Shown one piece after another: positions 2,714 through 52,218 of a stretch of DNA of 64,000 nt. Numbering within the stretch: the first letter of the stretch is position 1; the number at the start of each line of letters is the position of its first letter. The DNA comes from Orbicella franksi (taxonomy: Eukaryota). The stretch lies in the NCBI GenBank assembly GCA_964199315.1, contig OZ116699.1, positions 26,598,001 to 26,662,000 on the forward strand. The letters run 5' to 3'. Below the pieces are notes generated by a model. It saw only the letters and a program-made list of their open reading frames with translations, searched no databases and had not been told where the DNA came from. The position numbers were made by a program, and so were the translations under genes.

Positions 2714-5700
2714 ATGGGTTTTGGTTTTTTACTTTTAATAATATCATTAGTACCACTATCAAGAGCGAAAGGTAAGCGAAAACTGACAAGAACGTATGTT
2801 TTTACCATTGCATGAGATAGATTATTTCAGTTCTGCATCTGTACCGATACCCTACCTTAAATGGGACGTTACAAAGAGACAAATGATCACATTTTTAAAA
2901 CAGCCTATTAAGCCTTTCTCTGATTCCGTGTCCTGGACTTAAACTGTCAGAAACGAGTTCTGTAAATAGACTCTCAAATACTTAAAGAATAAGCTTAATT
3001 ATGTCCAGGATATAAACTAAATCTGGGATAATGAATCGTGCAGCAGGTTGCGAGTATTTGAGCGGAAACTGAAAAGTTCTCTATGAGCTTATTACAGCAA
3101 TAAAGAGCAAGAAATAGAAAACTTTTTGCGTATCTGCAGCATTTAAGAAACAGTTGAATGTGAATTAACGTACATTTTTACGTTTACAAGCATCCGTGTG
3201 GATGTTGTAATACTTAAGTTATTAGACATATTTCAAGTAGTTTAAATGCATCTATGCCAACGATGTTATGTTAACAACGATGTAAGGAGACTTTCTCAAG
3301 TATCTTTCTCAGTATCTGCAAGGCAACGGACAGTTTTTGTTCACACCAAGTATGTTAAAAGTTTACAAGCTGGCGGTAAAATTACCCGGAGAGTATATTT
3401 AGCAACATAGCTACCAGAAACCCATTATTGTCATAACGATAATTCCAAATACCTAAATGACATTGAGATTGTTTGCATGTGCTTTTAATGCTACTATATA
3501 ACCGAAAGCAACCCTAACTCCAGAATGTTCTTTCCACCCTATTACCTTAACAAAGCTATTATTAACGCTCATCAGTGTTACTAACAAAAGCGCTGCTAAA
3601 CTAACTTTCAGACCTCCGATCTCCGACGTCAGCTGTTGACCGTCGAAGTGCTCCTGATGCTCTTCTCGGCGAGATCTTTAACGATCCAAGCGCAACAAGT
3701 CTAACAAAACTCAACCTCGAGGATAGTGACAGTGACAATGACGACTTTTCCGGTTCGGGTTCGGAACTGTGGTCGGGCTCGGGTGAGTTGCCGAAGCCTT
3801 CCGAAGACAGTAGCACACCCAGTGAAGCCGTGACGACAGACAACCAACAGGGACAAGCGACACAGACGTCGACACAAACAGACGCGACTTCCAATACAAC
3901 ACCAAGCGAAAACACTAACAGCTCTAATAACAGTAGCAGTGCTGACATAAAAGACAATACAAACATCTCAGAAACCCCCGCTGCTACCCCTGAGAGTACT
4001 AACTCAGTGAATTCTTCTACCGCAGCACAAACTGCTCCTCAACAAAGTTCGACGGAAGCGCCCATGACGTCACCAGTGGTGACGCCACAGGGCGCCGACG
4101 CAAAGTTACCCTCTACTGAGGATCAGAGCCAAAATAAAGTTGTGCAGACAGAAGAGAGCGACAAATCTTCCAGTGACCAGTCGACTCCCAATGCTGATTT
4201 TTTCCCTGCACAAACACAAAATCCCTTGGAAAGTATTCCTGATAATCCTGCTGCGGCCCTTGTGGGGCAGCAGTCTCCTGGGTTTGACGACAATTCATTA
4301 TATGACCCCACAATAGTGAAGAAAACAGATATTCCTGTTGCTGCAGATATGTTCTCCAATCCTTTAGGTAAGTCCGCTAAGGATTTGATTACATATCGTG
4401 ATAACTTCTAACTTACTTATCAACGGCAATGCTGAGTGCAACATAAACAGCCCATAAAAGCAAGAAAAGCTTTTTGGAATACGGGATTTTATGTTAAAGT
4501 AATAGACCAGCCTACGCTCTTAATAGAGTTGAAATACGTAATCCTGAGATGAGGTTGAAGGTTTTGTTTTATACGAAGGAGAAGATTTAAAAAAACGGAA
4601 AATAGCTTTTGCTCAAAGTTCGTTCTTTCCAGAACAAAATATGCTGAAGAGTAACCCGCGATGTACCAGCATCCTATCAAGTTAGAGAAGATGTTAAGTA
4701 ACGGCATTGATGAGACACAAGGATCACCTGATCTCTTGGATTGGACTCACTTGAACCTTGAACCTTGAACCTTTAACCTTTAATTTCATCAACAATCTTC
4801 TGGTTTCTGGAATTTGCTATCACTTTACTGACTTTTACTGCGCATGCTTTCTCTTCTCCAGCAGTTAACAATACAATGGACGTTCCAGGAACTGCTCGTT
4901 CAGCAATTCCGCAGGCACCGGTGCTTGCGCCGCAGGCACCAGCCGTTCCTAAGGCAGCCATTCCGTACAAGGGTTCCTTTCCATTACAGCTTCATAAATA
5001 CTCACCATACTCAAAGCTGATGAAAAAGAACATGATCGCAAATACGGGTGAGTAGAATGTTGACTGTTTTGTTTTGGAGAAACTAAACCTAACCGAGTTG
5101 TCCGATCAACTCTGTCAACTAAGCAGTGTTTAGTCCCTCTGCACGACCTGTTCACATCATTGGTAAAAAAATCAGCCATGCTGGGTCACAAGTTAAGCAT
5201 CGGGACATCCAGAACAAAACGAATGCCACGGATCACCATTATGTCTGATGATGTTTGTCCAAAGGGCCCGTTGCTTTCTGTAACAGCATTTAGGTTAACT
5301 GTATGACATGACGTTATTGTCATGCTGCCTTCTAGTGTGACACAATGAGTTTACCTCGCTACATCTGATTCTTTTCGTTACTTCAGGCTTAAACCAGGAG
5401 GCCGCAAAGAAATCTGTGATACCGCTCAATGCCGCAGGGGGTCTGCGGCCGCTGACGGTGAATCTGCCTCAGCAGCAGCAACCACAGCAGCAGCAAGATT
5501 CAACAAACCCTCAAGGCTATCCTCAACCCCAAGCGCCAGCCCTTGATGTCAACCCAGCGCAAATGCCTTTTGGAGACCAAGCCCAGGCCCCTCCTGCTGC
5601 ACAACCTTTTGCCCCAGCCCCTACTACATCACAGTCTCTTGCCCAAGCTCCAGCGGAGGCCCCACTGCAGAGCCCGCAGCAGGCACTCGACCAAGCTCAG

Positions 5701-8700
5701 GGAGATGTTCCCCAGGCTTCGGAACAAGCCTTTGCTCCTCAGGTGGCTGCTCCATCTAATATGCAAATGCCAGGGCCAGAAAATGTCGCGGCTGCATTTC
5801 CAATGAGTAAGAATTTTTTGTATTACTATATAGCAAAATTAAAGTGGGCCAAACCCCGCATTAACAACGAGCAATACTGTTGTGAAACATGTAGATAAAC
5901 CGTCGCTCATTGCTTTATCGATAGCTGTCGTTAAACCCCTAATGATGAAAAGGTAGTTCTCTGGCACTCTTTGCTCAGCCAAGTGAACCAAACAGCACTT
6001 AGATTAAGTACCTACAAAATAACTGAAGGTAATATCTCACTAGTCTTCTTTTTTTCTGCCTTTGTTGAGCATTCGTCGTTAATTCACTTCTGTTTAACAG
6101 ATACAACCATGAATGATGCTATGGCTGGAGCCATACCTCAAGAGACAACAGGAATTCCAGCCCAGGGTCTGCAGGTTGTGCCAGTCTATCAGGGGTTGAA
6201 ACCCAAAAAGCCTGTCATAGAAGAAGGTACATATAGTATCATAGTAGTTTGAAGACCTTACTCAAGATTGCAAAAGTTCTTGAGAAGACTTAGTTAAGCA
6301 AAATAATGTTATGTTCCTCTCTCTTTTTCCCTTTGAAAAAATGAGATGAATAGGGAAAATATTTGTCATTTTAGGCTCGAAGCCGTGCGGGAGAAAATGA
6401 ACTCCCACTCATCACTGAAAGCGTCTCTTAAGATCGCTGTAGGATGAGAACCGGTCAAGATAAAGCGGCCGGCGAAACAGGTTCCAAAATGTTCTTTTGG
6501 ATGCGATTAAGAAAGTGAAACACATGGGATTCCTTGATTTCTAACTACGGAGAGAATCATGGATTATCCATTTAGCTACCACCTACTTTTTTATGCTACT
6601 ATAAAGTGTTAAAAAAATAATAGACGAGAAAGAAAAGACAGTACTTTTACTTTATTAGAAAATGATCAGAAGCCATAAACAGTGGTTGGAATATTTATTG
6701 TTCATTGATTGGCCCATTATCAAAGATTTTCAATAATTACTGATTTTAAGCACTAACGTTATATTTTCCATTTACCGTTACACTAGATCAATGTGATGAT
6801 CAGTTTGATACTTGCCCTGAAATGGCTAAGAATGACTACTGTACTAAATATCCTGATTTAATGAAGATTCAATGCAAGAAGTCATGCAAATTTTGTGGTA
6901 GGAATTTTTTTGTTATAAATATTGTCATATGCAGAGTGCGACATTGAAATATGCGCTTGCCTTATGAAAAATGCAAATTTGCCCATTGTTCGAATTCTTG
7001 GTGAAAATGTGTATACAAGGCCAGTGAGTCTGGAAGTCGTTCAAGGGAGGTCCGGTAGCTTAATGGTTAGCTCGCTGGTGCCCGGATGAACAGTCCGGTT
7101 TTGACAGCTGACCGGGACGGTGTAGGGATTTTAGGTAGGCAAAACACCGGACTCTGTCACTCTCAAGGAATGTAAATGGATGCAAAACACAAACTCTTAG
7201 GGTTACGTGCGATTAACTAGCATCTCATACAGAGGAATTCGAAGCAGTTATGCTTCAGTTCATACTACAGAAGCCTGAATCCAGAGGTGTGGGCCTCCTA
7301 ACATGAATTATTGTTCTTTTGCTGAGTCAGCATAATTTAAAGAAAAAATGCAATGTAATAAGTAATTAGGAAACGACCATTTCAGCGAGAAAAACAACAA
7401 ACTCCATTGCATTTTTTCACCTTTAGAGATGAAGAAGAGAATATCTTCTGGTTCGACTTCTTTTATCTGCTTCATTAGACGGCTTAACTAATGACATTCA
7501 TTCACCATCCTTCCTACACAGAGGTCAAGCACGGTGACGAGTCTGGGTCGGGATATGACGAGTATGATTCAGGTTCAGCAAGTTTGTACTATGCTGATGA
7601 AGCTTCCAGTTCCGGGTCCGGTAACTGGGATGATGATAACGATGAAGGTGAGTGCAGAACTCTGGCTATATTGTATGGGTCTTGTATTGATCAGAACTCA
7701 ACCTTCCTAAAGAAAATGCCCCATATTGTTAAAGGCTGCAAGACGAACAGAAACTTAGAAGAGAGATGGCTGTTACCGAAAGCTTCGGCAAACAGCCTAA
7801 ATCATCGACAGAGTTAGATTCCAAACACACCAGGTGTTTTAGCAAAAAGGTACCGAAACGCACCTTCCATTTGATTTCCGGAAAGAAATTTCCGGAATCT
7901 TTGGCATTTGGAAAGCACCCTATAATTTTTTTCGAAATTGTCTTATTTGCAGATGACGACCCAGAATATAAAAAGTCTGGGATTCCTCAACCAATCCACA
8001 AAGTCCTGATGGCAAAATTTGCAGGAGCTGATTCTGGATCGGCTTCGGGCGCGTCCGGAATGGACGAATCATCAGCTTCAGATGACGACATCGTACAGAC
8101 TTCTGGTAGCGGTGAAGCGGCATCTGGCTCTCAGAAGAAAAATGAAGTCAATGCGATAGCATCAGGATCTGGTGAGGCCGCTGCAGCGCCGGTCACGGCG
8201 TCGCCAACTGTTGGGGCGGCTGAGATTGGCTCCGGGTCTGGAAGTCTGGCTGAAGGTTAGTTTGCATATAATGCATGAAATCTCATAAGAACACATTAAC
8301 TGTTTATTTCTGGTACTCGAAAAATCCATTAAACTCTTTTTCGCAAAATAGCTATTATTGTAGTAAACAGTGTTTTGAGGCGAAAGGGTCAATTCTGCTT
8401 TGTACTGACCTTTTCCCTTTCACCGTGTTTGTGTCTTTTTAAACAACAGCAATATATGGAATAGTTGACTACAGACTCAATCGTACTTTTACAAATCAAC
8501 TTTACTAACAGTTATTCTTGACAAAACAGCATGCTCATTTAAAGCATCTTATTTCAAGATCCTTTGTCGGATCGCATAGCATTGTAGTTATACATGTAAC
8601 GGTGGCTGCTTTTTCAGTTTTTAATACTCTGGCGGAACGATTTGCAAAGATTCCATTTTAAATGAAATGGTTTCTTTTAGTTTCGTTAAACTAGACATAA

Positions 8701-11700
8701 AATACGCGCACAAACTTGTGAGATACTAAACAATAAGTCGGTTTATAAAACAAGGTCACAATTCATCTAAATGCAACCCGACACTCCAGTAGTGGTCCGT
8801 TTTTCGTATTACTGAGATTATGTCAGTTTTCTTCTGACCTCCTAGTCTCTTCCCTTTTATCAATAACAGCAGTATGTTTGCACACCAACTACGACTTGCA
8901 CACTCTACTTGTTACTCTGAAAATTGATTTCCGACACATATGATTGATTACATCAACAGTTTATGTGTATCTCTCGACAACAGATCTTGCAACTGGTACT
9001 GTAAGCAGAGCTAACGAAAAACACAGCTCAATTCCGAGACCACAACCTCCACAAGTATCAGTGTATCCGAAGATTGACCTGAAAGAGATAGCCAAGGCTG
9101 TTAATGTGTATCGAGGTGTTGCGTTAAAGATGCTTGGCGAGGCGCTTGAGGGCGCAGCAGAAGAAAAAGAGCAGGAACTATCAAAGAAGTCTCACATTCC
9201 ACTTCCTCCTGCTACTGCCATCTTACAGAAGATGGGGTTTCCCGTGGGATACGATGATAGTGCCAAGAGGAATATGATTCCAAACATGATGCAAGATCCT
9301 AATATGATGATGGCTCCCAATAATGGAATGATGGGGTTCGTCAACAATGGATACGCATATAATTATCCACAACCTACTGGTAACGAACCTTTGGCCGACT
9401 TTTATGGCCAGTACCAGCAGCAACCAAACTTTGCGAGGTCGGGCATAATGGCGACACCCGAAGAAGAAGAAGCAGAAATACAGCAAAACGATGACGAGGG
9501 AGCCGCACAGGATGAGCAGCCCGAAGAGATTCAGCCAATTCAACAAGAAAATGAGCCGGCCAAACAGCAAGATAACGCAACAGAGACGGCGAAAGAGGTA
9601 GAGAATCAGGTAAAGAAAATAAGTAATGATTGTTTAATTGATGCAGGTAAAGTGGTATTGACTATTCGGTTAATACTGGTAAACTGTATTAAACGCCCAG
9701 TTTAGTGAGACAGTGGCTGCTCATCTGATACGGGTTAAGTTGTATGACTGTTTCTCAAAAACAGGTCCTGTGAGTTGGACATTTTAGTTGATATAATTTA
9801 GTAAAATGTTCTTAACTGTTCTGTTTAGTGGACATAAAAAGACCTGAAAACCATAACCTAATCAACTGCGACGAATGTAATGTATATGAGATCGGAAAAT
9901 ATGTAAGAGTGTGCTCTCCGTCGTCAAAAAATTATGTTCGTGAATTTCTTCTTTATATTTTGGCAGGATAAACCAGAGGCAGCACAAAACATGACTACCG
10001 ACGACAAGGACAAAAAGAACAAAATTGTCGACCCATTTGAATACGTTCGAAACATGGGCACCGGAGCATCGATGGAGCCTATTCGCTCGAAGACCGCCTC
10101 TAATTTAATATCCTCACATTCAGATCCTCTTATCTTATGGAAGAATTCTCAAATACAAGCTCTCGCTACCTTAGCAAAAAAGAAAAGCGATATACCGCAG
10201 CCCGGTAAGAAGAATCAATGGAAAAGAATCAAACTTGGTTTACCTGCCTAGTTAACCATTTTTAAATGGTTTCCTTTGAAAGGTCATGTAATCGATGCCT
10301 AATTTTTCGTTGCAATGTAGCTGATCATAGCTACATTTCAAGTCATTCGGCGTGTTCAGTTGTATCACTCAGGCGCAAAGGGCGGCAACAAGGCTCTTCC
10401 ATTCTAACTGGTCTTTTGTGGCCCTCTCGGTTGTCCTCCAGCATAAAGCAGTTGTATACTACCTACCAAATGTCCAACAGACAGAAGCAGTTTTAGAACG
10501 ATATTTAAAAAATCCTTTGATTAATTTTTCCGTAGGAAGTGAACCTGCAACGCCTGCAGAAACCAGCAATCAAGGAGCTTTCCAGTTCCCTCAGCAGCAG
10601 TTTAGATCTGACATTCCAGAGCAGAATATCACGATGAGCGGTCTGCCAGATATGACAGGACAAGCCTTCCCAGAATCGGCACCAGTCTTCCCGCAGTACA
10701 CACCCCAAAGTGATTATCTGACACAAACCCCTGGCGATGATCTCGCTGCAAGTGAGTACATCAGTGGTTACATGCTTAATTGGAAGGTCATTATGAAACG
10801 TTTCGAAGAATTACCGTTCCCATTGGACAACGATGAGTAATTATTTATCCAATGAACACAAATCACATTTAACAGTAGCAATGCTTACCATTAACTCTTT
10901 GATAGTCTCCAAACTTCACCCAAAACCACTTAAGAGTCAAAGGAATCCTTGAAATCTAACTTTGAAAGAGAGTGCCAATTAAAACTTAAAGAAAAGGATA
11001 CCCCGCTTCTACATAGTTCTTTGCACACCCGTTTTTTCTTGGTGCACGTGATTCACGTTTCATAAATTTGGCTAAATTCTGCTTTCATCAATTCGTTATG
11101 AACAGGAAGCCAAATCGTACAAAGCCAGGCACCACAACAGCAACAACAAGGTATGTGACTCTGTATTATTTCTTTCTATTCATATTTTCAAGTTTTTAAA
11201 AAGGCTTACGGATTGCACTTATTTGACAAAAAGTACTCGAGACAAAAGTTGAATTTCAGCTTATCTTAATTTCCTAAAAGAAAAAAAAAAAAAAAAAAAA
11301 CGTTACGTCTTCTACTTATCTAATCCACGACTGACTGGTACGAGTTTGCCAGACTGGACATTAAATGTGTTCTCAACTGTTGATAAGTAGGATAAAGTGA
11401 CTTCTTCGATCGACAGTAAAAGCGTGCTCAGAAAAAAACAAACAAACAACATCAAGTCATGACTTACACGCGGCTCCGCTTTTAAAATAATGTTCTTTTC
11501 TACAATAAATTCAAACCGCTTTGGTCCTTAATCTGCTCTTAATTCTATTGCGGGCGCTAAGACGCTAAGCAAAGTAAACCTAACGCGATTAATTTTCACT
11601 GCCGAAATTGCTACTTTGGCTGGTCGATGCTTCAGTGCTACTCTCAGAAAGCAATAGCTGAAGGCACCATTACCACTGTTGACACTACCACCATCACTAC

Positions 11701-12386
11701 AACAACATAAGCAGTTGCTGTCATTTTTCTTTGTTATTCCTTTTACTGCTTGGTGTTATTCAGTCTGTTTTCTACTTCTACACGTCTCTATTTTCCTGTT
11801 ATTTCACTGTGACGACTCATACCACACTGGAACTGAAAGTCAATAACATTTCACAAAACCTGCCCTCATACACTTTATAATATGTAATCTTTATCCCTTA
11901 GGAGTAATTTCATTTTTCGTAACTTTTCCTCTCCTTTTGCTACTTTTTGTCTACACTCAGCATTTTCACTGTTTTTTTTTTTTGTTTTTTTTAATTTAAA
12001 TTTGCCTTCTGCCTCTCAAACATAACTTTTAACTTTAAACTTTGGCGCCGACCGCTTTCGTTGCCGTCAATGAAACAAATCCTACTTCAAATAAATAAAT
12101 TTACCTGAAATGTGACCACTAAATTAAATTTCTTACACAGTGACATACCGATTACCATTCAAAGTTCGCCTCGTATACTGTAATCTTGGCGAAAGGAGAG
12201 CTTACATACTCAAGAAATAAAAATCTGATATTATTTAAGATATCCTCGGAGATACCCTTAGCAATGGCAGCATGAATGAATCGGAGCCTGCACGTTTCAG
12301 ACCAGCGTCATCATAAAGAGAAAATGCCGCTAACAACGGATGAAGATGAGCCTTCTGACGTTTACAAAACCGCGTCAAAAGCGTAA
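2714..12386 (+). CDS. Gene A: secreted low-complexity, Ser-Gly/acidic (proteoglycan-like) protein with one ShKT domain, ~1100 aa
   Basis: The exon chain stays in frame with GT-AG sites: 2714-2771 (signal peptide MGFGFLLLIISLVPLSRA), 3612-4367, 4865(or 4862)-5047, 5387-5806, 6101-6226, 6787-6897, 7522-7647, 7953-8255, 8984-9609, 9967-10204, 10536-10751, 11106-11150, and a tentative terminal exon 12301-12386 (DQRHHKEKMPLTTDEDEPSDVYKTASKA*). It explains ORFs 3788, 5416, 5971, 7491, 7766, 8944, 9934 and 10352. The terminal exon is less certain. Confidence 0.75.
6787..6897 (+). CDS. ShKT domain exon of Gene A
   Basis: Symmetric phase-1 exon encoding DQCDDQFDTCPEMAKNDYCTKYPDLMKIQCKKSCKFC. Six Cys with the terminal C-x3-C-x2-C pattern typical of ShKT. 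Confidence 0.9.
7045..7296 (+). mobile_element. Degenerate tRNA-derived SINE
   Basis: tRNA-like head (GGGAGGTCCGGTAGCTTAATGGTTAG...) and a body homologous to the reverse complement of the better-preserved copy at 35891-36180. Confidence 0.65.
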
Positions 12387-12879
12387 CGATTCGGAGAAGT
12401 TCCTTATCCTTCTTATCAACAAACTAGCGATAAAAAGAAAGTTTGCATTTCGCGTTTTGTTTCAAAAGAACAACGCTTCTAACATCAGATTTGCATTTTT
12501 CTAACAACCAATAGGCGATCAGGAAAGCAGCCTGAGAGAGTTAAGAAGTTACTTTCCTGAGGACGAGTAACTATGGGTCGATATGGAGTTAGCCTTAAGG
12601 TGGCTGAGAATAAAAACAAGCTATGCTAGCAATCCCGCCGTCAACGATACAGTATACGACGGACTTGTTTCCACACCAACACAACTTGACGAGATCAACA
12701 GTTTCTTTACATTATCAACACTAACAGTCATATCAAATAAGTGCAAAGAAAGACTACGGGAATAGGAAATAGAACTTACAGTCTCGAAATTATAATGTAA
12801 ATTAATTGTTCATGATTTAACCTTGTTACTTCTCCCTTTTTATAAAGTAAAATAAAGGAAGCGATATTTCCTGAACCCT

Positions 12880-22300: not shown

Positions 22301-25300
22301 CCAAAGTCGGCTAACCAACCCTGAACAAGCTAAGGCAGTGAAAATCAGGTCATAATAGTACATGCTGGTATACATTTGAGGGGTCAATGGTGGTAGAGGC
22401 TTCAAAGATCCACTTCGTTCTGCAAGGCCAGAATCACAGCCAAGAGAAACATGAGTCCAATTACATATTACAGACTTTGCTGGAAGCATATAAAGGAGGT
22501 CGTTTGTAAATTGCCATTAACTAGTATCTTCGGAAATGTCAAACTTAATTTCGCATCTTTTTGCGTCTAACGCTTTGTCACCATTTTCGTTCATTTTTGT
22601 TAGATAAACACTGTAAGTTTCTAGACTTCGTATCAGTTACGTATATTACCAACCATGCATTTGGTATAACTTAATTGACTATTTCCTTAACAGCTAGTTT
22701 ACCGACGGATAACACGGAAACTGACAATGCAGCAGCTGCCATTAACGAGGCATTCACAAGCCCCTCAATACAATCCCAGGACCAGCACTCTTCGGATCCT
22801 CTGTTTGGCTCACTGAATTCAAAGATCACCACGTCACTGGAAAGTGCTGATGAAACGCCAAGCGATGATCCAATGGACAAGTTCTTCTCTCCAGAAGTAC
22901 AAATTTCGGGTAAAATACCCAGTGGTGAAAACATAGACGATGGAATCGCCGCTCCTGGAGCCTTCCGAGGACAGGTTTCTAAACCAAGTGGTAAGGAAAA
23001 TTAGGTTACCAATTCGTCACCAACTCTGGTGGAAACAGTCAAGTTTAACAGTGCCATAGACTCTGGCAGTCAGTTCGTTATTAAGGTATTTCCCGCGCCT
23101 GACATTTGGTTCTTCCTTTCATGGTCATATCTAACCTCGAAAATGCAAAGCTAGGAGGTATTGCAGAGATAAACAAGGGGCATCGTGAAACTCCTTACTT
23201 TAGCCTCCTTCACTGATCAAGAGCTAGTTGAGAACGTCAAGATAGACTATTGAGTCTGAGATATTATTGGGACAGGATATATTAGTAGTAGATATTTCAA
23301 GAAATGCCAAAAGACATTTCGGCTTATCACAGTACAATGTGAAGGTCATTCCTGAACAGCTGCGACTGGGCTGAGATGGAAACCAGAACCTTCTTGGTCA
23401 ATTCAGAGTGGTTAAAATTTTCGAAAGGAATTAGTTTTTCCTGGGTTTTCTTTTTACCAAGATTTTAACATTGTACCACTGATTTAATACCATCATGATT
23501 CGGAATAAGGAGGACGGGTTATGGGAGATAGGTATCATGAGACAGTTGCAAAGTAGTCCTGCATGCATAAACCAACAAGAGGAATATCTATTATATGTTT
23601 CAGACACAGACACGTCATCTTCCGACACACAGAAAGGAACTGCAAAAGGAAAGATTTCGGCTCCAAGTTCAGCCTCAGTGCTTCCACCACTTCACCATGA
23701 CGCGGAACAGGCCCAGAATTTACCACCATTGAATCACGGGATAGAATTGGCTGGCGCTTTACCTCCGCTCAATCATAACATCGAGACAGCCTCACCTTTG
23801 CCTCCACTGAATCATGGAAAGGAAGCAGCGGAGAATTTACCACCCCTAATGCACAGCATTGAACAGGCCAGCAATCTACCACCGCTCAATCACGGGACTG
23901 ACGCCCTTCAAAGTTTTCACAATCTGCCACCTTTAAATCATGGGGTAGAACAGGCCGAAAACCTGCCACCATTGAATCACGGAATGGAAAGTAATGGTTT
24001 ACCGCCTTTGAATCATGGCAATAATGAGGCGGCAGTGTTGCCACCTCTTATGCATGGCGTGGAGCAGGCTAAACAAGCTCCAAGTGCTAGCTTTGAAAAG
24101 CAATCTTCACAAAATGTTGATGCTTTAGCTTCTTTCACATCGCAGGTTGAAAACGCAGCGTCGTCAAGTAACAATGGTAAGCAATCTTATCCAGAGTTAC
24201 CAGTAGACCTAAATGGGGTGGGAAGAAGTTCTTTAGTAATGTCAAAAACTCACAGTGCTGACACTGCGAATTATTTCTCACCTCAACGAGTTCTGAACCA
24301 ATCATTTGCAAACAACGGAGCTCTTTTGCTCAGGAATTACTACAATATGATGATACCAGAGGTTCAAGGGAAGGAGTTTGTAGATCGACCGTTGTCTATT
24401 CCTAACGTTAAAAACGAAACAGTTGACCAGTCTGAAAATAGGAAAGAAATTCCACTTCCAGAATGGGTGGAAAATGCGCAGTCAAAAGCTTTGGTTCCCT
24501 ACGCGTATGACGATACAAAAGAACTTCAAAATCTTCTCAGTGCTGACCAAATATCACAAGGTATGACGACCCCAACTACTGCAGTCAAGTTTGGAATCTC
24601 TGGCACATCAGGTATAAATGTTTGTTCTGAATTTCGAGCTTCTTGGCTGTTTTCATTTGCGATAGGCCACCCTTTTCTTTGTGGTCTTTGTATTATTTCT
24701 ATAAAATTTTGATGCCGCTGGCATGGCCCAAACAATTTGAATATCTATTCTCAAGACATCTTGGTTAATACCTGAGATTTTTTAAGTTTACATTTCTTGA
24801 CGCACTCTACAAAAATTATTTTGGACTTTTACAGAAAAAAAAAAACTGCAAAATTATCTTGGATGTTTACAGCAGAAAAAAATAAAACTATATATTACCT
24901 TGAACCTTTGATAAAATGCCTATTCGGTTTTGATCAAAAAAATGAATTAAGAGCACAACATTATCATCAACAACAGGAACAGCAAGAGATCCGCTTGCAA
25001 ATTTTCTGCGCAACTGGCAGACAAATGCCACAAAAGATTCCAGTTCATACCCATCAAAGAACTGGCTCGATAACACCAGCAACAGGAATTTTCCACCTGA
25101 TAACACCATCGCTACAAACCCGGCTGTAAAGAATGAAGACGTTTCAGGTAACAAAAAGAACAGATCATCACTAAAGCTGGAAATTGCAAAAGAAAAGGCT
25201 GAAATTGTGGACTCGTTAGGAAAACTAGAAAAGGGTTTAGAAGATGCTCTTGCTGAAACAAGAGAAAATGTCCCAACGCCGCAACCACAAGGATACAACT

Positions 25301-28300
25301 TTGGAAACAGGCAGCCGCTCCAAGTTCGGGTTCCTACTCCTGGTCCATCGGTCGGAGTTGGAAGATTCACTGGATCTGCTGTTCAATTTAACCCAACGTT
25401 AAATAACCTAACTAACACTGGGAATCCCCGAATTAATTCACTTAAATCAACTGACGTGTCCCAGACTCCTAGAACTGGGACTAATTCAATAATTAATAGT
25501 TATAATACAGTCCCGGTCAAGCCCCAGGAACCAATTTTACCCTATTTAACAAATGTAAATCCACCAAAGGATAACGATGAGTTCCAAAGACAGCGTCTGG
25601 CGCCTAATCAGATAGCTAACGAATTGACATCAAATGTAAACCTACAAACGCAAAGCCTGAGGTTTAATCAAGCAGCAGCTAAACCAAACAGTAATGGACT
25701 TTCCCAGATACAGAATCTGGGTCTTAACGTGGTTGCTAATCAACCTAGAAACGGTACAGAATTTGATGATGGTAATCCAGTAACTAGCCAACCTCCATAT
25801 AACAGTGAGTTTAACTTACCTAACTTTCCTTCTCCTAACCAGCAGTATGTTAACCCATATCTTAACCCAGGTGAAATGATACAGAGCTACGTTGGTAAAC
25901 CTCCCTTGACTCCCCCTCTTGAGCATGCGTACCCTATGAGTCATGAGCATGAGGCTCTTCTTCCGCCATTAAATCACCAGCAACTTCCGCCTCTCAACCA
26001 CAATGACTTGGTAGCTACCGAAACCTCCAGGTATACCGGAAGTGACGTTAATGCATTCCCGAACCAAGGTAAGAATTAATTTTATCATGACCAATCAAGA
26101 TGGCAGAGTTCGATGCATTAATTCCTTTTTAACCATTTAACCGATGCTGGAATGCTTTGTTGTCATTCTTAAATGAAATAAGTTGTTGTTGCTGCCAATG
26201 TGGCCCAAGTTGTGTCTCGCGAAGTTGTTATGTCTCGTGTAATGGGTTAACATGTCAATGCTATGGGGAAAATATTATCACTAAACTCTTGGAGAAATAA
26301 TGCAGTGATATCATAATGTGTAAGATAATGTTGTTTAACAGGAGTATGTCACAATAACAACAAATCACTAAAACAGCATCAGCTTAGGACTTATTCCAAA
26401 AGAGAGCATTTACCAAGTGCAGAAAGTTGCTACTAACCTCCCGTTAAGAGCCAATCAATCCAGGTTTTATAGTTATCTGAACGTTTTAAAAATGGTAGAC
26501 ATGAACGACAAACGTCATTTAACCGAACAAGACATTTCACACGATAACCTTTTGAAAACAGGTCAAGCAAGGTCCAATCCTGCGCCACCAATATATCCCT
26601 TCACCATCCCCCCTGAAGGACAGCAGGAGAACCAAGGTTACCATGGTTACCAAGGAAGCGAAAACAACAACGATGCCATAAAGGTACTTTGTCATTGTTA
26701 CTTGTGTAGACCTCACATTTTATGTTGATATATAATTAGTTAGTTTGTTTTCTAATCATTTGTAGTTTGAAACAAATACGTTCATTTTTAAGCCTAACCC
26801 TTTTTCAGTGTCTCAGGCCTCCATTTCAGACGCCTCTATTCTCAAACGAGGAAGGAATCGTGCTTTATCTATTTTTATTTTTTTAACTGGAAAGCTATCA
26901 TTTAACAACAAGAATCCATACCGTTATCACATAACTAGGTAACATTAACTCGTTGTTTCTTATTTTTCATCAAGACTAGTTCCCAGGCCTCTGCTCGAGG
27001 ATCTCTGCCATCAGCACAGTCTCCCTATTATCCACTCCCTAAATCAGCTAACCAGCAACAGGTATGATAACGGTGGAAAAATAATTGCTTAAGGAGACTG
27101 GGGCGGTGGAAAGAGGGGAACAAGAGGAGTATTAGACCACAAATTAAGGAATAACATTTAACTTAATCTGTAAATTAGACTAACAGGAAATCACACTATT
27201 GTGTATCTTTAAACTCCAAATTTAATCAGCTTGTTTTGGGTTGATTTGCCTCCTGAATGTTATAAGCAACCAAATACTAACCCTGTCTATAGAAAAATAG
27301 ATTAAATAATGTTCAGTGACATTCATAACAATAATTTGTTTTAATAGACTATTTTACAGTTGTCTGCTCAGTGACCTGGCCTTTGTATGGCAGCGAGGCT
27401 AGAGTTGACCTTGTTTTGATACAGACCTCACTGCTTTTGTCATGTAAATGCACCTAGTTAGCATCAGAACGACTTGTTTTGCACAACAAAAGCAGTGATG
27501 TCTGTATCAAAACAAGGTCAACTCTAGCCTCGCTGCCATACAAAGGCCAGGTCACCGAGCAGACAACTGTAAAATGGTCTATTCTTTGAAGTAAATGTCG
27601 ACTTTCTCATAATCACAATCACAATCATAATCATAAGCATAACCATAACCATAACCATAACCATAACCATAAGCCTAATCATAATCATAATCATAATCGT
27701 AATCATAATCGTAACATTATCCACTACAATCAGTCAACCCTTTTTATCAAAAAGTGGTGTAAAGTTTACGTTGAGGTTTACTCTCCTCCGCGCGAAACTA
27801 CGTCAAGAAACACGGTTATGTAAAGAACCATGTGCTCTTATATGATTTTTTATTCGAATTTGGTTTCTGGAGGTTTCAGCGTTCTTGGCGATTCTATTTC
27901 TGCGCATCAAAGAGCATTCTGATAGTGTAATCTGTATTGGGAATGGTATTAAATTACTGTGATGTCAACAGCCTGCGGTTACTCGTCAATGGTTTCCAGA
28001 GGGCGGACAACCTTATCCAATCCCATTGCCACCAGAAGGAATTCAGCACGTTCCAATAGACACAGACGACACTGTAAGATCAACTTAAAAACAATCTTAG
28101 TTTTAGAGCGTAAAGGCACACCAAGAGTCTTCAAAAACAAGAAATCGTTTGGGATAGACTACCACTGTTTTTGTAAAAGCAGTAGTTTTCCTTTCCTATT
28201 TCGTAAGAGACTATCATTGAACCAATTCGTTTAGTCGTTTGAGAACTAAGCAGTGGACGAACAGTCCCACCTGCTACTGATGGTACTCTAAGCCATCGAA

Positions 28301-31300
28301 ACAACGCGATTCGTTGATCCAATTATATCGGCAATTTTACCACGTTGTTATGCACCAATCAAATCGAAATATCAATATCCCTCCCTCGGAAATCTACTTG
28401 TCGACTTTTTGACACGTATAGCGTTCATTTTCCTTAAATGCCAACGTTGCATGAGATTCAACTGTATTGCTAGCATTGTTAACAATGAATGACGTTCTAC
28501 CAGCGTGCACGTACATGAACTAAACTTCTTGCGTCTCCTTCTCCTCGTCCTCTATCTTCTTCCTAAGAATTCTTCTTCTTGGTTTTCTTCTTCTTTAGCC
28601 TAAATGAGAAAGCTGCATAAATGTTACTTGTGTAAAGCAAATTTACCTTGCAAGATGTATTTGATTAGTTTCGTATTTTTCAACCGTGACAATAATTTGA
28701 TACGGTGATTTGATAAGGTTCCTCAGTCCTTCTACTACAGTACCCATGAAATTAACAGTCACAGTGTCTTTGAAATGTAAACTTTAAAATCCACCTATAT
28801 AAAAGTCGCGCTGTACCTGAAATTCATAGAATAAACTCAAAGTGTTTTGAACAACAGGAAAAGAAACAGAAACTGCCTTTACTTAGACAGTGCAAATTTG
28901 TTCTGCTGAGTTTTGCTACTGAGGTTTTACCAATGTAGTTATCTAATTTCCAACGTTTCCGACTTTCTGGGCACTGGAGAAAGTATGAGATCAAATTCCC
29001 ACAAGATGTCGGGTGGAATACTGATTTTTCGATTTGATTAAATGGTAACAATGAAATTTTAACAAGATCTTATGTTGTAAAAGTTATGCTCGAGTATCAA
29101 AAACTTAATCGACTGAAGGTGAGTGCTTAAAGACGAACTAAGCTCAGCTTGTATCATTTTATTGCCGCAATGGCATGCAGCCGATTGACAGCCAGTTGTT
29201 GGAGGATCCAAGCCCGTTCCCGTTGCCAATAGGATGGAAGAGAGGAGAAAACAATAAACCTGTAAGATCATAAACGTTAAGCAGTTGATTTAGAGAGTGT
29301 TATAATGAGTCATCCTGTCGAGCCTAAGACAAAAATAGGACTATTTAAAAGAGTGCGTTAAAACGTCCCAAAATCGTCTTTATCTCTAAACAGTTCACGT
29401 CATACATATCGCTCACTTCATGCACGTTACAAGGAATTGTACCATGCACCATTCCCTACCACGTCTATCGAGGTCATGTACATCTTGTTGCATATAAATG
29501 AGCTAAACTTCTTATCACGTCATGTCAAACACATCAAGGTGTCAAACTTACATTTATCTTTGTACTATTGTTATTGACTGGTGTTTAAACGTTACCGACA
29601 GAAACCGTGTGATAATGGTGATAACTGGTGTCCTTACCCGTGGTACCCAGTACCACTGCCACCAGAGGGACAGCAGAGCGATCCAATCAACCAAAGGACT
29701 CAAACAAACCCCAATCCAACTAACAACATTGGCAAAAAGAACTTAATTCGACCTAAACCAGGTAGGTCATGAGTATGGAGCCAAAGTTTCTTTGACGGTC
29801 AATTCAATAGCTGTTACCACTATAATCAATGTTCCATAAGGCTGGCACCAACTTTCAAACGCCGTCATTTTTGAATAAAAATAGCTGTGGTATCAGGTCT
29901 ATGCAGCTGCAGGAAAAGTGTTTTGTAAGTGAAGTTCATTTTACAGAAGGTGAAATAAGGCTGCTCAACCCGATATAGCATTGATATAACATTTTCAAAA
30001 AATGACTACGACATGAAAAATGTTTGTTGAGAAAATGCTGTCCAAAAAATTTTCAACAGCAAGGAATTTGAAACGTGATAAGACTATTTCTTCCATACAG
30101 CCGAAAATTAAAGGCCCCTTTGGTATGTTTCTGAGAGAAGGATGGCATGTCCCCTATAAGTAGAGGGCTTTCCCTCGGGTATTTGTATTATTTATTTGAC
30201 ACGTAAATACGAGTTATCTGCCTTTCTATCTTTCCTCAAGAAAGTGAGATGTTTGATATTCCAAACACTAGATATGTTTTCAAAGGATATGTAAGCGAGA
30301 ATTGCGTGTTGTTTTTACTGCAGACCTTCAATGCGGCGCCGGTTGGACTGGAGCTCTCGGTGACTTTGGTTCATTTTGTTACAAGGAGATTTTTGAACAT
30401 AAAACATGGGACAACGCTCATCACACATGCAAAGGTCTTGGCGGTGATCTTTTCAGCGTGACTAACGCCTATGAACAACGTTTTCTTGAAAACTTCACCA
30501 ATATTGAATCTTGGTTGGGATATCGGGACAAATCCCGGGACGGGACGTGGACTTGGAGTGACTCAAGTCTGTCCGTGTTTACCGACTGGGACAGCAGTGC
30601 TAAGGACGATCACGGCAAAGGTCGAGACTGTGTCTTGCTAAGTTCTAAAGAAGGCAAATGGAAAGATGCATCATGTTCACAGACTCACGAATACCTTTGC
30701 AAGAAAAAGGCCGAAGGTAAGAATATTTTGTAGACTGTAATATTAATCACAATTTATTTACTGTGAAATGCTCTTTAAGACCTAGTTCACACTGATGACA
30801 TAACGACAGAATCGCTCATGTCGGTAATGTGAACATCGACATAAAGATATTCTTTTTTCCTCATGTCGTTATGTTCATGGTGCTATGTAGCTATCATGCT
30901 ATTATGCCAGGATGTTCACACTGCAAACACAACAACATAATGCCCTTCCTATGTCGTTATGTTGCCAGTGCTAGGCTTTTAAGCAATTATTCCCTCGACA
31001 AAAGAACATTTACGTAGTCAGTTCAACAGAAATAAGGAGGCCATCGACGTTCACCAACTGCTTCGATCCATTTGAACTTGACACCAACACCTAAATTACT
31101 TACGCTACAAGTTTCAACCTTCACAATTGCTGATGCTGTTTAAGGTACGTTTATACATTTTGCAAAGTCTTAGTCCTGATTACAGTACTTATAGTTTTTA
31201 TGAAATTTAGATTGCAATAAAGGCTGGAAGAAGCTGACCCTTAACTCAGTCCGCGGATGTTATAAATTATTCAAAGAACCAAAAACGTGGGAGCATGCGC

Positions 31301-49300: not shown

Positions 49301-51936
49301 ACCCAGACAAAAATAAAATTTTGTTTAGACTTAATTATAAATGAGAGTTAAAAAAAATTGCAGGGAACAAGTGCGACCCAGAACCATGTGAAAATGGCGC
49401 CAAGTGCATCCGGGATAATAAGAGGATGGATGGCTACCGATGCAAATGCACTTCTGATTTTACAGGACGGAACTGTCAAGGTAATTGCCTGCATACTTTT
49501 AAATTTTACTGAAAGCATTACAACATTTAAAACCTTGAAAAAGGCGCCCTCTTTTGAATTCTCCAAAAAAGCAGTTTCCTCTCCCCTCCGCTAAAAGAAT
49601 CACGTGCACAACAAGAAAAACATGTCAGATGTTCAGAGAAAATATACCGAAACAAATTTGTGGATCTTCGAATCTTTAATTTTAAAGTGAGTTCCATTGT
49701 AAAGATAAGTAATGAATGGTTGTCCAAAGTGTTAACGTAATTTAACAAGAGTTTGAGTAACCTGGGCAATACCTTTTATTGAGGCGTTCTTTGTAAAAGA
49801 ACGCCTCAATTGCACGCCTGTATTGTAAAGAAGAGCATACAAGTCGTGAGATAATATTATTGAAAGAGGAATACAAACTAAGGTGTTGATTTCGGTGTTT
49901 AATTCCAGTTTCCAAGCCAGATGCTGAGAATCCTATCGTAAAGAAGGCAAAAATTCCTAAACCTGAACTGAAGATCGGAAATGAGGATTATCAAAAGAAT
50001 GCCAGTGCCTTAAATCTGATTGGTGAGTTTTCCATTCCTTTTTTTAAACTTTGAAGTTGGGAAATCCGAGATGGCATTGCGAAATAAAGGTATTTGACTA
50101 TGGAATTTTCGAGGGAACAACAAACGTTGTACACATGCGCAACTGAGGTAACGAGAAAAAAACTGTGGTGAGTCTTCTCTTGCAGATTTTAGGGAAAAAA
50201 CATTGGAAGCCATGTTGCCCCGAAAATGGTCCAACAAGCGAGTTCGAGATGAAACATACCCCTGATTTCTTCTCGATTTTAAAGTCGCTAATTGTGTTTA
50301 TATTTTAGTCAAATAATAGTGAAGTTAATAATGTCAGTAGTATTCTATGTAGTTCTCACAATTCTAGCAAATAAAGATTAATAAAGCCTTTTCTTTAAAT
50401 TCAAACAACAGAAAACCTACCAGAAGAAAAGAAAGAAGACGTGCTCTTACTTTTCCAAAAGGTCGGCTGTTACAAGGACGAGATTGTAAAACATGATCTG
50501 CCGGACAGAGCCACAGTCAAATCCGTCACTCAGGAAGACTGCGTACGATCATGCGCACTGGAAGAAAAAGGATACTCATACTTTGGACTTCAGGACGCTG
50601 ACAAGTGTTTTTGCGGGCATCGCTATGGAAAGTATGGCAAAGCAGATGAGGCTCTCTGTAACATGCCGTGCAAGGGAAATGACAAAGAGAACTGTGGTGG
50701 TAATTCTACAAATATGGTTTACTTCTTTGGTTTAGGTAAGTTTTTATTGCATCAAAAAACTGCGGCGTGGTTAGTCAACCGAAATTAATCTTATAGGGAC
50801 ACCTCCAGGGAGCTTTACCACGAAATAATCCCCAGTTTAAAAAGTGACAATGCCCCATCAATAAGACATAATGGTTTTGCCATTTTTGTTTTCTGAGCCA
50901 GTGATGATGTTCGAGTCATTTTCTGAGTCATTTCAATTTCGAGTTTCCACTCCAGCATGATACAAACTGTTTCATAGTTTTGAAATTTTCTAAGGCTCAC
51001 GTTTTTGCTGGCATGTCGTGTAACCTAACTATTCTATCTTCAGGTACTAATTACACTATAACTACTTCAACTGGTGACATCGATGGAGCTGACACAGACG
51101 CTAAGGTATACATAACCTTATATGGGGAGAAAGGCGATTCGGGATTCAGAAAACTGGACACTAAACATTTTACAAGGGGAAAGTAAGTTGATATCTCGTT
51201 TGAATGACCACAGTACAGAATAATGTGTTCATGTTTTATTGGTCATGCATTTTATATGATGTTGTTTAATCTCTCTTCTTCTTAGAAATGATACAAACAC
51301 TCTCGTATTACCTGACCTCGGTAAGCTGAGGCAAGTTAGAATTCTACACGATAACTCAGGATCAACTCCAAGCTGGTTCCTGGAAAAGGTGCGAGATTAC
51401 ACTTGTGTGGAATTCATAATTTATTCAAGAGGCCATTTCTCTGAAGAAGCAGAGAGCTGTGCTGAGACCAGAAATGCTTTTTGCACCTTCAATAGCCAAT
51501 TTACTCTATGAGACGTGCCTGCGGGGAATCGCGGTAGTTGTATTCATCATCTTAGACTGGATATTTGTTTCGATGAATACAACTACCATGATTCCATGCA
51601 GGCGCGTCTAATAGAGGGAATGGGCGATTGTTTGGATTCGAGCCAGACCACATGAATCTCATTGGTGAATCAAAGCCACGGTCATAGATATTCCAAGAAA
51701 CTAGGATATGATTGAAAAGAACCAGAAGAAAAATCCCCTCGAGTAATAGTGTCCGAACCTTTTCAATGGATCAGTCAGTCAGTTAATGACTTATTCATAC
51801 ACGTAGTGCTAAGGAGCTCGAAAGCTATTTGACAAAATTTCGTGTGCAAAAGGATACTAAACGATGTGTAATAAGAGGGAAAAAATACTAAATACTAAGA
51901 GATTAAATCTAATATGATTTATTTATTTAGTTAGTC

Positions 51937-51973
<37 letters not shown>

Positions 51974-52218
51974 TTCATTTAATTATATAATGTTGTTTAC
52001 AATGAAACCACGATCGAGTGGAAACGAGCAAAAGGTTTTCACGTTTTAAACAGGGATATCCCCTTTCAGGTTCTTCAAACTTCATTTCTCCCCATGTTTT
52101 GCAGGTGACAGTGACAGATGAAAATGGTCGGACGTATGAGTTTCCATGCAAAGAGTGGCTGAGTGAAACACAAGGTGGCGGCAAAACAGAACGACTTCTC
52201 AGACTGCAACGTACATAG
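17829..52218 (+). CDS. Gene B: giant secreted mosaic protein (~2800 aa): low-complexity/LPPLNH repeats - 2x C-type lectin - 2x pentraxin/LamG-like - 2x PA14 - LamG - EGF - WSC - PLAT
   Basis: About 42 phase-compatible GT-AG exons: 17829/31-17888, 18123-18323, 20113-20250, 20836-20934, 22003-22101, 22694-22990, 23604-24611 (alt donor 24560), 24977-26068, 26342-26416?, 26499-26683, 26975-27061, 29602-29761, 30324-30716, 31211-31374, 31824-32034, 32449-32478, 32574-32672, 32958-33166, 33550-33663, 33942-34165, 34547-34629, 35191-35414, 36374-36546, 36774-37024, 37389-37710, 38158-38330, 38837-39041, 39491-39607, 44373-44545, 45033-45071, 45671-45787, 46501-46760, 47317-47566, 47987-48064, 48518-48589, 49184-49201, 49364-49480, 49921-50022, 50412-50735, 51044-51182, 51286-51388, 52105-52218 (TAG). 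AATAAA follows at 52318. The 5' end and the 26.3-26.5 kb region are uncertain. Confidence 0.8.
19318..19372 (+). repeat. (GTT)n / (GTTTT)n microsatellite
   Basis: Read directly from the sequence. Confidence 0.9.
20257..20425. mobile_element. Non-autonomous DNA element (MITE-like) in a Gene B intron
   Basis: Imperfect inverted arms (GTTTGAAAACGAGTC ... GACTGGTTTTGAAAC). A related copy is at 12.9 kb. Confidence 0.5.
21261..21530. mobile_element. Truncated DNA-transposon-like insertion (TTAA-AG start, Kolobok-like)
   Basis: Present after duplicate copy 1 but absent at the equivalent point of copy 2. Begins TTAAAGTGCCTATGAAA; the right end is not recognisable. Confidence 0.35.
22131..22287. mobile_element. 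157-bp insertion with an 8-bp target-site duplication (ATTCTCGC)
   Basis: The empty site in copy 1 reads GAGTATTCTCGCATAATCC. In copy 2, ATTCTCGC flanks the insert at 22123-22130 and 22288-22295. The insert has C-rich ends (..GGGAGTATCCCCCCCCCCCG). Confidence 0.85.
23681..24058 (+). repeat. Coding array of 10 LPPL(N/M/H)H repeats with ~13-aa period
   Basis: Visible in ORF 23495-24712. Two more copies lie at 25960-26001. Confidence 0.95.
27343..27583. mobile_element. Fold-back MITE with ~95-bp terminal inverted repeats
   Basis: AATAGACTATTTTACAGTTGTCTGCTCAGTGACCTGGCC... is mirrored by ...GGCCAGGTCACCGAGCAGACAACTGTAAAATGGTCTATT. Confidence 0.9.
27608..27715 (+). repeat. Compound hexanucleotide microsatellite (CATAAT/CATAAC)n
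   Basis: Read directly from the sequence. It generates the spurious I/M/V-rich ORF 27524-27724. Confidence 0.9.
30324..32034 (+). CDS. Two C-type lectin domains of Gene B (exons 30324-30716; 31211-31374 + 31824-32034)
   Basis: CGAGW..CYK..TWDNAHHTC..WLGY..WTWSD..DW..C..W.D..C..YLC and CNKGW..CYK..TWEHALVAC..FWIGYND..WVWSD..NW..C..WHDEPC..FIC. Confidence 0.9.
30781..30975. mobile_element. Degenerate palindromic MITE
   Basis: CCTAG..ACTGATGACATAACGACA is mirrored by TGTCGTTATGTTGCCAGTGCTAGG. Confidence 0.55.
32958..37024 (+). CDS. Two tandem pentraxin/LamG (ConA-like) domains of Gene B
   Basis: Paralogous exon sets: G(L/V)xL(N/D)G..(W/F)L..G....CL.DP..C..G(F/L)S; Y(V/I)LDS.G..RG(V/L)S; W.....L(T/S)W....GL.LY; IGRK/VGRK. 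The style resembles the N-terminal pentraxin domain of ADGRD1-type proteins. Confidence 0.8.
35891..36180 (-). mobile_element. Near full-length tRNA-derived SINE
   Basis: The reverse complement begins GGAGGCACGGTGGCCTCATGGTTAGTG (A-box-like) and ends ...GGGCCACTTGGCAGGTATGCAGACTTT. Homologous to 7045-7296. Confidence 0.85.
37389..44545 (+). CDS. Two tandem PA14 domains of Gene B
   Basis: Each has G(L/V)IREVW, FDAP...D.DYGSR(V/I).G(Y/F)F.APE(T/S)G.Y.F, GELW(M/L)SS, L..GKYYY and LPSG.F..PI, as in B4GALNT3/4-type PA14 domains. Confidence 0.9.
42465..43226 (-). CDS. Nested antisense gene, 253-aa basic Ser-rich protein of unknown function
   Basis: A 762-nt uninterrupted ORF inside AT-rich Gene B intron 39608-44372. 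There is an in-frame stop 8 codons upstream of the ATG, a pyrimidine-rich acceptor just upstream, and AAAG|GTAAA donor-like sites near 43355 and 43630 (possible spliced 5'UTR). Minus-strand AATAAA near 41105. Confidence 0.7.
   Translation of the reverse strand: MDMDVRKLNSRYAGGKKFYTRASQEEEKCFPAITNNYQYERQRKTETSFRDRSQQETKTTLKQEKKAFRLPRISVKRESFSMCKRCYSHANLCTSSSNNFDSNTSPFNSFAAKKVNFHGTVKFAGAAANSRSSQRLLQSLRIVDLNISENKPSFQRENSLRICPMELFPRHTRKAIKSHPVKLSRPELQATYPTLKLAPIDKNAIFALSPSLSLSVESLDSIIGGALTLTQPPPDILSSCSPSEIDFTPPSTP
45130..45310 (-). mobile_element. 3' fragment of a second SINE family
   Basis: Shares CTAATTGGGGACACTG and AATCCCA..TGGT...GCTGACCAG.TGGCTATTTAC with 59241-59542. Confidence 0.75.
45671..47566 (+). 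CDS. LamG/ConA-like domain of Gene B (exons 45671-45787, 46501-46760, 47317-47566)
   Basis: PVGLYPLN, AFEFKGTADSFVEIPN, MTILANVYP, WNQVGATYD, LWHNG, IRIGA, FTGKISCLQIYNKAL. Confidence 0.85.
49364..49480 (+). CDS. EGF-like domain exon of Gene B
   Basis: Phase 1-1 exon encoding NKCDPEPCENGAKCIRDNKRMDGYRCKCTSDFTGRNCQ. Confidence 0.9.
50412..50735 (+). CDS. WSC domain exon of Gene B
   Basis: VGCYKD..C..SC..GYSYFGLQDADKCFCG..YGKA....CNMPCKGNDKENCGG. Confidence 0.9.
51044..52218 (+). CDS. C-terminal PLAT/LH2 domain of Gene B (3 exons) and stop
   Basis: YTITTSTGDIDGADTDAKVYITLYGEKGDSG; DLGKLRQVRILHDNSGSTPSWFLEKV; YEFPCKEWL. Confidence 0.9.
51491..51630. mobile_element. Small palindromic MITE
   Basis: GGTAGTTGTATTCATC is mirrored by GATGAATACAACTACC, with weaker outer arms. 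Confidence 0.7.
51928..51974 (+). repeat. (TTAG)n microsatellite
   Basis: Read directly from the sequence. Confidence 0.9.

Follow-up and report, generated by a model that had tools for sequence, protein, structure and literature searches.

What does a proline-rich hexapeptide, repeated twelve times in one gene, do for a stony coral? This question is raised by a 64,000-nucleotide stretch of DNA from Orbicella franksi (assembly GCA_964199315.1, contig OZ116699.1, positions 26,598,001 to 26,662,000 of the forward strand), which was analysed at its full length and is called the window here; positions are counted from its first letter. The motif LPPL(N/M/H)H recurs in it in two arrays, both encoded on the + strand by the same gene. 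The initial annotation of the locus had offered two answers: a new peptide family released from a lectin precursor, or a periodic His motif that binds metal or mineral. We suggest instead that the two arrays are lineage-restricted short linear motifs, which would act as multivalent docking sites in a disordered, probably secreted protein. We assign this reading a probability of roughly 0.45.

The N-terminal array occupies 23681-24055 (+) and holds ten in-frame copies with a period of 13 amino acids. These are LPPLHH-D at 23681, LPPLNH-G at 23720, 23798, 23876, 23924, 23963 and 23999, LPPLNH-N at 23759, LPPLMH-S at 23837 and LPPLMH-G at 24038, spaced by 39 nt except for one interval of 48 nt and one of 36 nt. 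The C-terminal array (25909-26001, +) is read in the frame of the next exon. It is headed by a degenerate thirteenth copy, TPPLEH (25909-25926), and continues with LPPLNH at 25960 and 25984 (25960-26001); a conserved tail, ...ETSRYTG, lies just past 26001, 3' of the array. When the sequence was checked directly, the twelve copies (ten plus two), their positions and the residues that follow them all agreed with the earlier description. Chance does not explain these copies. Shuffling the exon residues generated at least one LPPL.H in just 14 of 10,000 trials, and a DNA pattern for two neighbouring motif copies matched this locus alone in the 497-Mb genome, with 0 matches for the reversed control. 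Neither a protein search nor the paired-motif DNA pattern search found paralogues in the window's own genome. No DNA-level tandem repeat was detected in the array by Tandem Repeats Finder, so the array is repeated at the protein level only.

The copies are also kept by selection. Motif copies use five of the six Leu codons and three to four Pro codons, and the hexapeptide differs among the ten window copies at a proportion of 0.90 of synonymous sites (pS, saturated) and only 0.10 of non-synonymous sites (pN). For the spacer, taken as the six codons after the motif, pS is 0.77 and pN is 0.49. Over more than 20 kb the window is collinear with three loci, L002, L003 and L004, which share its ShK module upstream and its lectin exons downstream. 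In a codon alignment with L004, pN/pS is 0.045 for the motif, 0.26 for the spacers and 0.57 for the rest of the exon, and with L002 it is 0.093, 0.40 and 0.57, respectively; because pS is uncorrected and near saturation in both comparisons, these ratios are rough. Individual units, including the ones with the long and the short spacer, hold their positions across five proteins, and the units of the N-terminal array are positionally kept in orthologues. These values support strong purifying selection on the hexapeptide. The initial annotation had argued for protein-level selection from diverging synonymous codons around an unchanged hexapeptide; the observation is borne out by the codon counts and the inference by comparisons both within the array and between orthologues.

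Homologues were sought with an exhaustive HMMER search over 1.84 billion representatives. Seven real relatives (P0001-P0007) were recovered, all of them unannotated open frames in ENA or Logan assemblies from other corals, and the other matches were unrelated low-complexity proteins. No annotated homologue was found: a search with P0004 (484-1540 aa window) returned unannotated ENA/Logan frames only, and a cluster look-up of P0001-P0007 gave no protein names. The motif is present in all seven relatives, and both array positions are occupied in those long enough to span the C-terminal region. Two further proteins, P0038 and P0039, likewise carry both arrays, and copy number varies; the C-terminal array has two copies in the window, at least seven in P0039 and about 12-15 in P0038.

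Alignment of the repeats defines the unit. The N-terminal array follows the consensus A-x-N-L-P-P-L-N-H-[G/A]-[V/I]-E-x-A-x-N with period 13, and the C-terminal array of the homologues follows N-S-[L/F]-L-P-P-L-N-H-E-[Q/E] with a period of about 11-12 and ends in a conserved ...LPPLNH-x-x-LPPLNH-x-D...(T/A)SR(Y/F)TG. Over 101 units, L1, P2, P3 and L4 are conserved at 96-100%, H6 at 90-100% and N5 at about 80-86%. An acidic residue (E/D) stands at +3 from the His in 64 of 73 N-terminal units (about 88%) and at +1/+2 in C-terminal units, and Gly or Ala follows the His in 85% of N-terminal units. A literature search for LPPLNH gave no match, and PPLNH occurred in two unrelated papers. The LPPLNH motif family is undescribed and lineage-restricted.

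Both arrays sit in spliced coding exons of one transcript. The runs that contain the window carry coral or coral metagenome labels. Most of the stretch is present in six RNA runs from separate studies, and junctions were determined by mapping reads of two raw-read runs and two contig runs on the window. The RNA junctions, all GT..AG, are 22990/23604, 24611/24977, 26068/26562, 26683/26975 and 27061/27972. They define the N-terminal array exon (23604-24611, +; 1008 nt, phase 1-1) and the C-terminal array exon (24977-26068, +; 1092 nt, phase 1-1). These are preceded by a coding exon at 22694-22990 (+), conserved in L002, L003 and L004 by tblastx, and followed by a small Pro-rich exon (26562-26683, +; YPFTIPPEG), a small exon (26975-27061, +) and the last RNA-proven exon (27972-28088, +; FPEGGQPYPIPLPPEG). 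Joined together, and with a 99-nt exon placed upstream of them at 22003-22101 (described below), the exons give an uninterrupted frame of at least 935 amino acids that is rich in Pro, Asn, Ser and Gln (11.6% Pro, 10.6% Asn, 9.6% Ser), contains no Cys, and has seven N-x-S/T sequons and two dibasic sites, neither beside a repeat.

The segment between the arrays is optional. A donor after 24176 (GTAAGC) joins either 24977 or 25871, which makes 24177-25870 (+) an optional in-frame internal intron and shortens the protein between the arrays by 145 or 443 residues. Each of the three in-frame splice forms retains 12 of 12 motifs. RNA support for the internal junctions is thin, with four raw reads (X23) for 24176/25871 and one X15 contig for 24176/24977. 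The DNA of the internal donor and acceptor is conserved in L002, and that of the acceptor also in L003; in L002 the two array exons form one fused open frame of 880 amino acids.

The array protein is very long and is predicted to be intrinsically disordered. AlphaFold models of the N-terminal array exon, made with its orthologues, gave a predicted local distance difference test score (pLDDT) of 44.5 and a predicted template modelling score (pTM) of 0.14, with the array as coil. The second exon (pLDDT 44.8) was modelled as disordered but for one long helix. Both alignments were shallow, with seven and five sequences, and are weak evidence. Pfam gave no match for either array exon or for P0004, P0038 and P0039, a PDB sequence search returned nothing, and neither did an ESM Atlas feature search. 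The confident repetitive fold expected of a tandem-repeat (solenoid) domain is not predicted, given the low scores and the coil obtained from the seven-sequence alignment, and there is no PDB sequence match. The helix, at about 25153-25266 (+; residues 59-96 of the second exon, pLDDT 73-86), is conserved in closer orthologues, and no other part of the repeat protein has a confident structure prediction.

Under the docking reading, this long, Cys-free, disordered stony-coral protein would be made whole and not cut into peptides. Each copy would form a small docking site from the L-P-P-L core, the N-H pair and the nearby acidic residue, and with ten plus two (or more) copies the chain would bind multivalently, through avidity, either a folded partner or further copies of the matrix. 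The variable spacers, together with the optional middle segment of 145 or 443 residues, would set the reach and spacing of the sites. Because conservation is higher at Leu and Pro than at His, the motif looks less like a mere metal ligand than like a surface for contact. We infer the docking function and the extracellular location, and also a physical link to the upstream ShK module or to the downstream lectin-type domains. Disordered, matrix-like proteins that carry a conserved array of short linear motifs are a kind already known. Arrays of SH3, WW and EVH1 ligands and the polyproline-II spacers of titin PEVK type similarly repeat a short Pro-centred motif in a disordered region and are multivalent, but they are intracellular, whereas the coral protein is probably extracellular. 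Several points weigh against docking. A binding partner is neither known nor predicted; no 5' end or signal peptide was found, so the protein may be an intracellular carrier of proline-motif ligands; the conservation of His and carboxylate fits metal binding equally well; and a fold could have been missed by AlphaFold with alignments of only seven and five sequences.

Metal binding is the alternative that survives best, and we consider it unlikely. It holds that the arrays are metal- or pH-responsive through the His, the carboxylate three residues on and the Asn of each unit. As to mode, several units would jointly chelate Zn2+, Cu2+ or Ni2+, or switch by His protonation, and we judge this to be similarly unlikely; as to effect, the disordered chain would be reversibly cross-linked or compacted, for which we see the same limited chance. 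The strong conservation of the His, the acidic residue at +3 in N-terminal and at +1/+2 in C-terminal units, the small residue after the His and the disordered, Pro-rich context are all consistent with this idea. As expected of a His-based metal repeat, the array sequence presents a periodic His with a second potential ligand in each unit. However, His makes up just 8.6% of the array, a single residue in every 12-13, and Leu1, Pro2, Pro3 and Leu4 exceed the His in conservation, which a pure ligand role would not require. The motif was also missing from the supplements of one Acropora skeletal-proteome paper, a weak negative. For the initial proposal of a His-spaced metal- or mineral-binding structural motif, the conserved acidic residue at +3 speaks in its favour and the higher conservation of Leu and Pro speaks against it; a folded repeat is not predicted.

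Prion octarepeats bind Cu2+, and the His-rich, Pro-rich amelogenin self-assembles. The prion octarepeat (PHGGGWGQ) and other His-bearing tandem repeats that bind Cu or Zn resemble the coral array: the sequence is disordered and contains Pro, each unit has a single His with a small residue behind it, and copy number varies. They are unrelated in sequence, and compared with the octarepeat the coral array has a period of 13 rather than 8 and an invariant L-P-P-L core. Amelogenin and other Pro/Gln/His-rich biomineral proteins share with the coral protein a Cys-free, Pro-rich, His-bearing and disordered chain in a calcifying animal, but the coral protein is not homologous to them, is much longer and is built on a defined hexapeptide instead of loose PXX repeats.

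Self-assembly or an elastic tether is a further and doubtful alternative. According to it, LPPL units would be hydrophobic polyproline-II stickers and the acidic spacers would keep the chain soluble. The outcome, which we hold to be equally doubtful, would be that a mucus or matrix protein condenses or gels, or simply that flanking domains are held apart. The Pro/Asn/Ser/Gln-rich composition without Cys or predicted fold, the differences in copy number between species and the optional middle segment all suit this idea. Elastic and spacer roles, however, usually constrain composition and not an exact hexapeptide, and here pN/pS is 5-10 times lower in the motif than in the spacers and single units are positionally kept between species. 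Both a metal or pH switch and sticker-and-spacer behaviour could coexist with docking.

Proline-rich motifs are classical intracellular ligands, and the LPPL units might be ligands of SH3, WW, EVH1 or MYND type modules in an intracellular scaffold whose gene is separate from the flanking ShK and lectin genes. We regard this as improbable. It would agree with the failure to find a signal peptide and with a short isoform that ends before the lectins with its own 3' untranslated region (3'UTR). Against it stand the seven N-x-S/T sequons, the phase 1-1 structure of all exons and the upstream organization of the gene. That the exon at about 18129-18323 is internal follows from its AG acceptor, which sits immediately 5' of GTTTAC and is unchanged across four species, and from a 7-nt indel upstream of the exon in L004, which breaks the frame. 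The gene must therefore begin further 5'. The nearest, and only, conserved + strand coding sequence upstream belongs to a ShK-bearing gene, the last clear exon of which has at its end, near 10783, a conserved phase-1 donor matching the phase of the 18129 exon. Since the gene starts further 5' and the nearest conserved coding sequence there has a fitting donor, a secreted location of the repeat protein is likely, and the ShK-bearing exons may be the 5' part of the repeat gene.

Two candidate starts were rejected. For the ATG at 18095, the 7-nt deletion in L004 downstream of it brings in an in-frame stop, and the invariant AG acceptor also argues against it. The N-terminus of P0039 has a signal-like appearance but contains a polypyrimidine-AG acceptor and is probably intron plus acceptor; moreover, an orthologue of the window exon 22694-22990 lies upstream in L003, and in the window that exon is RNA-spliced to the repeat exon. 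A scan of 10.8-18.1 kb for a first exon (ATG, hydrophobic start and phase-1 donor) gave none that was convincing. The ShK domain itself lies at 6777-6899 (+; Pfam E 1e-7) amid long, low-complexity Ser-Gly-rich exons (3788-10790, +) and is conserved in L003. The 18129-18323 exon is the best conserved of the region, with the stretch ...GSFPLSLRKIVPGMAQKKDELYKQVQEG 83% identical even in the most distant locus, L003, and it has no Pfam match. Blocks at 11364-12680 are 67-94% identical to L002 and contain stops in all frames; this is conserved non-coding sequence, either the 3'UTR of an upstream gene or elements within a 7-kb intron.

At the 3' side, a short, lectin-free isoform with its own 3'UTR is real. 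One X15 contig continues unspliced past the donor at 28073, and this read-through leads to a TAA stop at 28086-28088. The 3'UTR (28089-28855, +) has an AATAAA at 28830-28835, and an X15 contig is continuous over 28044-28299. Fourteen RNA runs contain 25-69% of the words of 28110-29170, of which the top share fits an end near 28850; X30, a single-cell library, contains part of the 3'UTR. A putative long isoform would run on into the lectin exons. Its continuation (29181-30733, +) would add two exons, at 29181-29261 and 29602-29761, and then the first C-type lectin exon from 30324, the phases of which fit. In favour of it, X23 raw-read depth drops roughly ten-fold after 28100. The phase-0 GTAAGA donor after 28073 is conserved in both L002 copies of the exon, and in L003 one exon fuses the PYPIPLPPEG motif of the 27972 exon with the KKNLIRPKPG end found ahead of the lectin exon. 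Between 28850 and 30324 no signal peptide can be seen, which also suits the long isoform. The "lectin precursor" of the initial annotation is thus a candidate reading: the isoform seen in RNA stops before the lectin exons, while exon phases and the fused L003 exon would fit a continuation into them.

The downstream + strand exons at 30324-52218 encode extracellular-type domains, with Pfam matches to Lectin_C (two), Laminin_G_3 (three, one also weakly Pentaxin), PA14 (two), WSC (50441-50788) and PLAT (50980-51186 and 52018-52218). The combination of WSC, C-type lectin and PLAT recalls polycystin-1/REJ-type proteins, a comparison of domain content alone.

Several features of the smaller exons and introns were also recorded. 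Upstream of the RNA-joined exons, a loose end of one X15 contig, mapping to 22064-22093, suggests a junction 22101/22694 and with it a 99-nt phase 1-1 exon at 22003-22101 (+). This small exon (...PQP.QM.PG.SRS.LLPG) occurs in three tandem copies, at 20113-20251, about 20834-20932 and 22003-22101, with about 1.1 kb of flanking intron copied along; they are possible cassette exons. A Y-P-x-x-(L/I)-P-P-E-G motif is common to the three small exons at 26562-26683, 27972-28073 and 29602-29761, and the 27972-type exon has two copies in L002 and is a single fused exon in L003. The intron between 27061 and 27972 contains a repeat at 27300-27720 with an RNA contig depth of about 2,700, compared with 10-20 in exons, and many loose ends, probably an expressed repeat of dispersed type or a piece of a transposon. 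A trinucleotide-type simple repeat lies at 27524-27724 within the same intron.

The proposal with the least in its favour is that of a neuropeptide or bioactive-peptide precursor, from which LPPLNH(-amide) would be freed by non-basic processing with X-Pro-Pro protecting its N-terminus. A published screen for cnidarian preprohormones asked for a signal peptide and for three or more GKR/GRR/GR sites with similar peptides before them, and acidic residues can serve as N-terminal processing sites in Cnidaria (PMC7523074). The repetition of identical short peptides that each begin L-P-P, the Gly after the His in 7 of 13 window copies (TPPLEH counted) and the acidic spacer residues all speak for such a precursor. 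As in GLWamide, RFamide and Antho-RPamide preprohormones (criteria of PMC7523074), many short-peptide copies are separated by acidic residues, and an L-P-P type N-terminus would resist aminopeptidases. Yet none of the twelve similar peptides precedes a processing site. GKR, GRR or GR follows the motif in 0 of 88 copies in eight proteins, G-K follows it at the 23798 copy only, and the window protein's two G-R sites have no relation to the repeats. Gly after the His is not conserved, at 62% in N-terminal arrays, 1 of 23 in P0038 and 0 of 28 in C-terminal arrays, where the flanks are quite different. The protein is at least 935 amino acids long and mostly non-repeat, so that the arrays are a small share of it; neither of its two dibasic sites adjoins a repeat, and no signal peptide was found, the 5' end of the gene not having been reached. 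With LPPLNH also matching no paper in the literature search, the neuropeptide answer of the initial annotation is dropped as highly improbable. The locus does not belong among new neuropeptide genes, and a false lead is removed.

What remains is a clean case of selection localised to six residues within a disordered protein, which gives a concrete and cheap handle on the partner or ion that is recognised. This handle rests on the two arrays, on splice forms that change their spacing and on the change of copy number between species. The mucus, adhesive and skeletal matrix proteins of corals are largely uncharacterised and often disordered. A bolder idea, which we consider unlikely at present, is that the motif is an invention of the coral lineage, an extracellular motif for recognition or metal switching through which one giant, disordered protein of the matrix would cross-link or would recruit partners. 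If this were true, the gelling of mucus, the adhesion of cells to matrix or the skeleton's organic phase could be under the control of such a "coral octarepeat", tuned between species and tissues by its copy number and by the optional middle segment.

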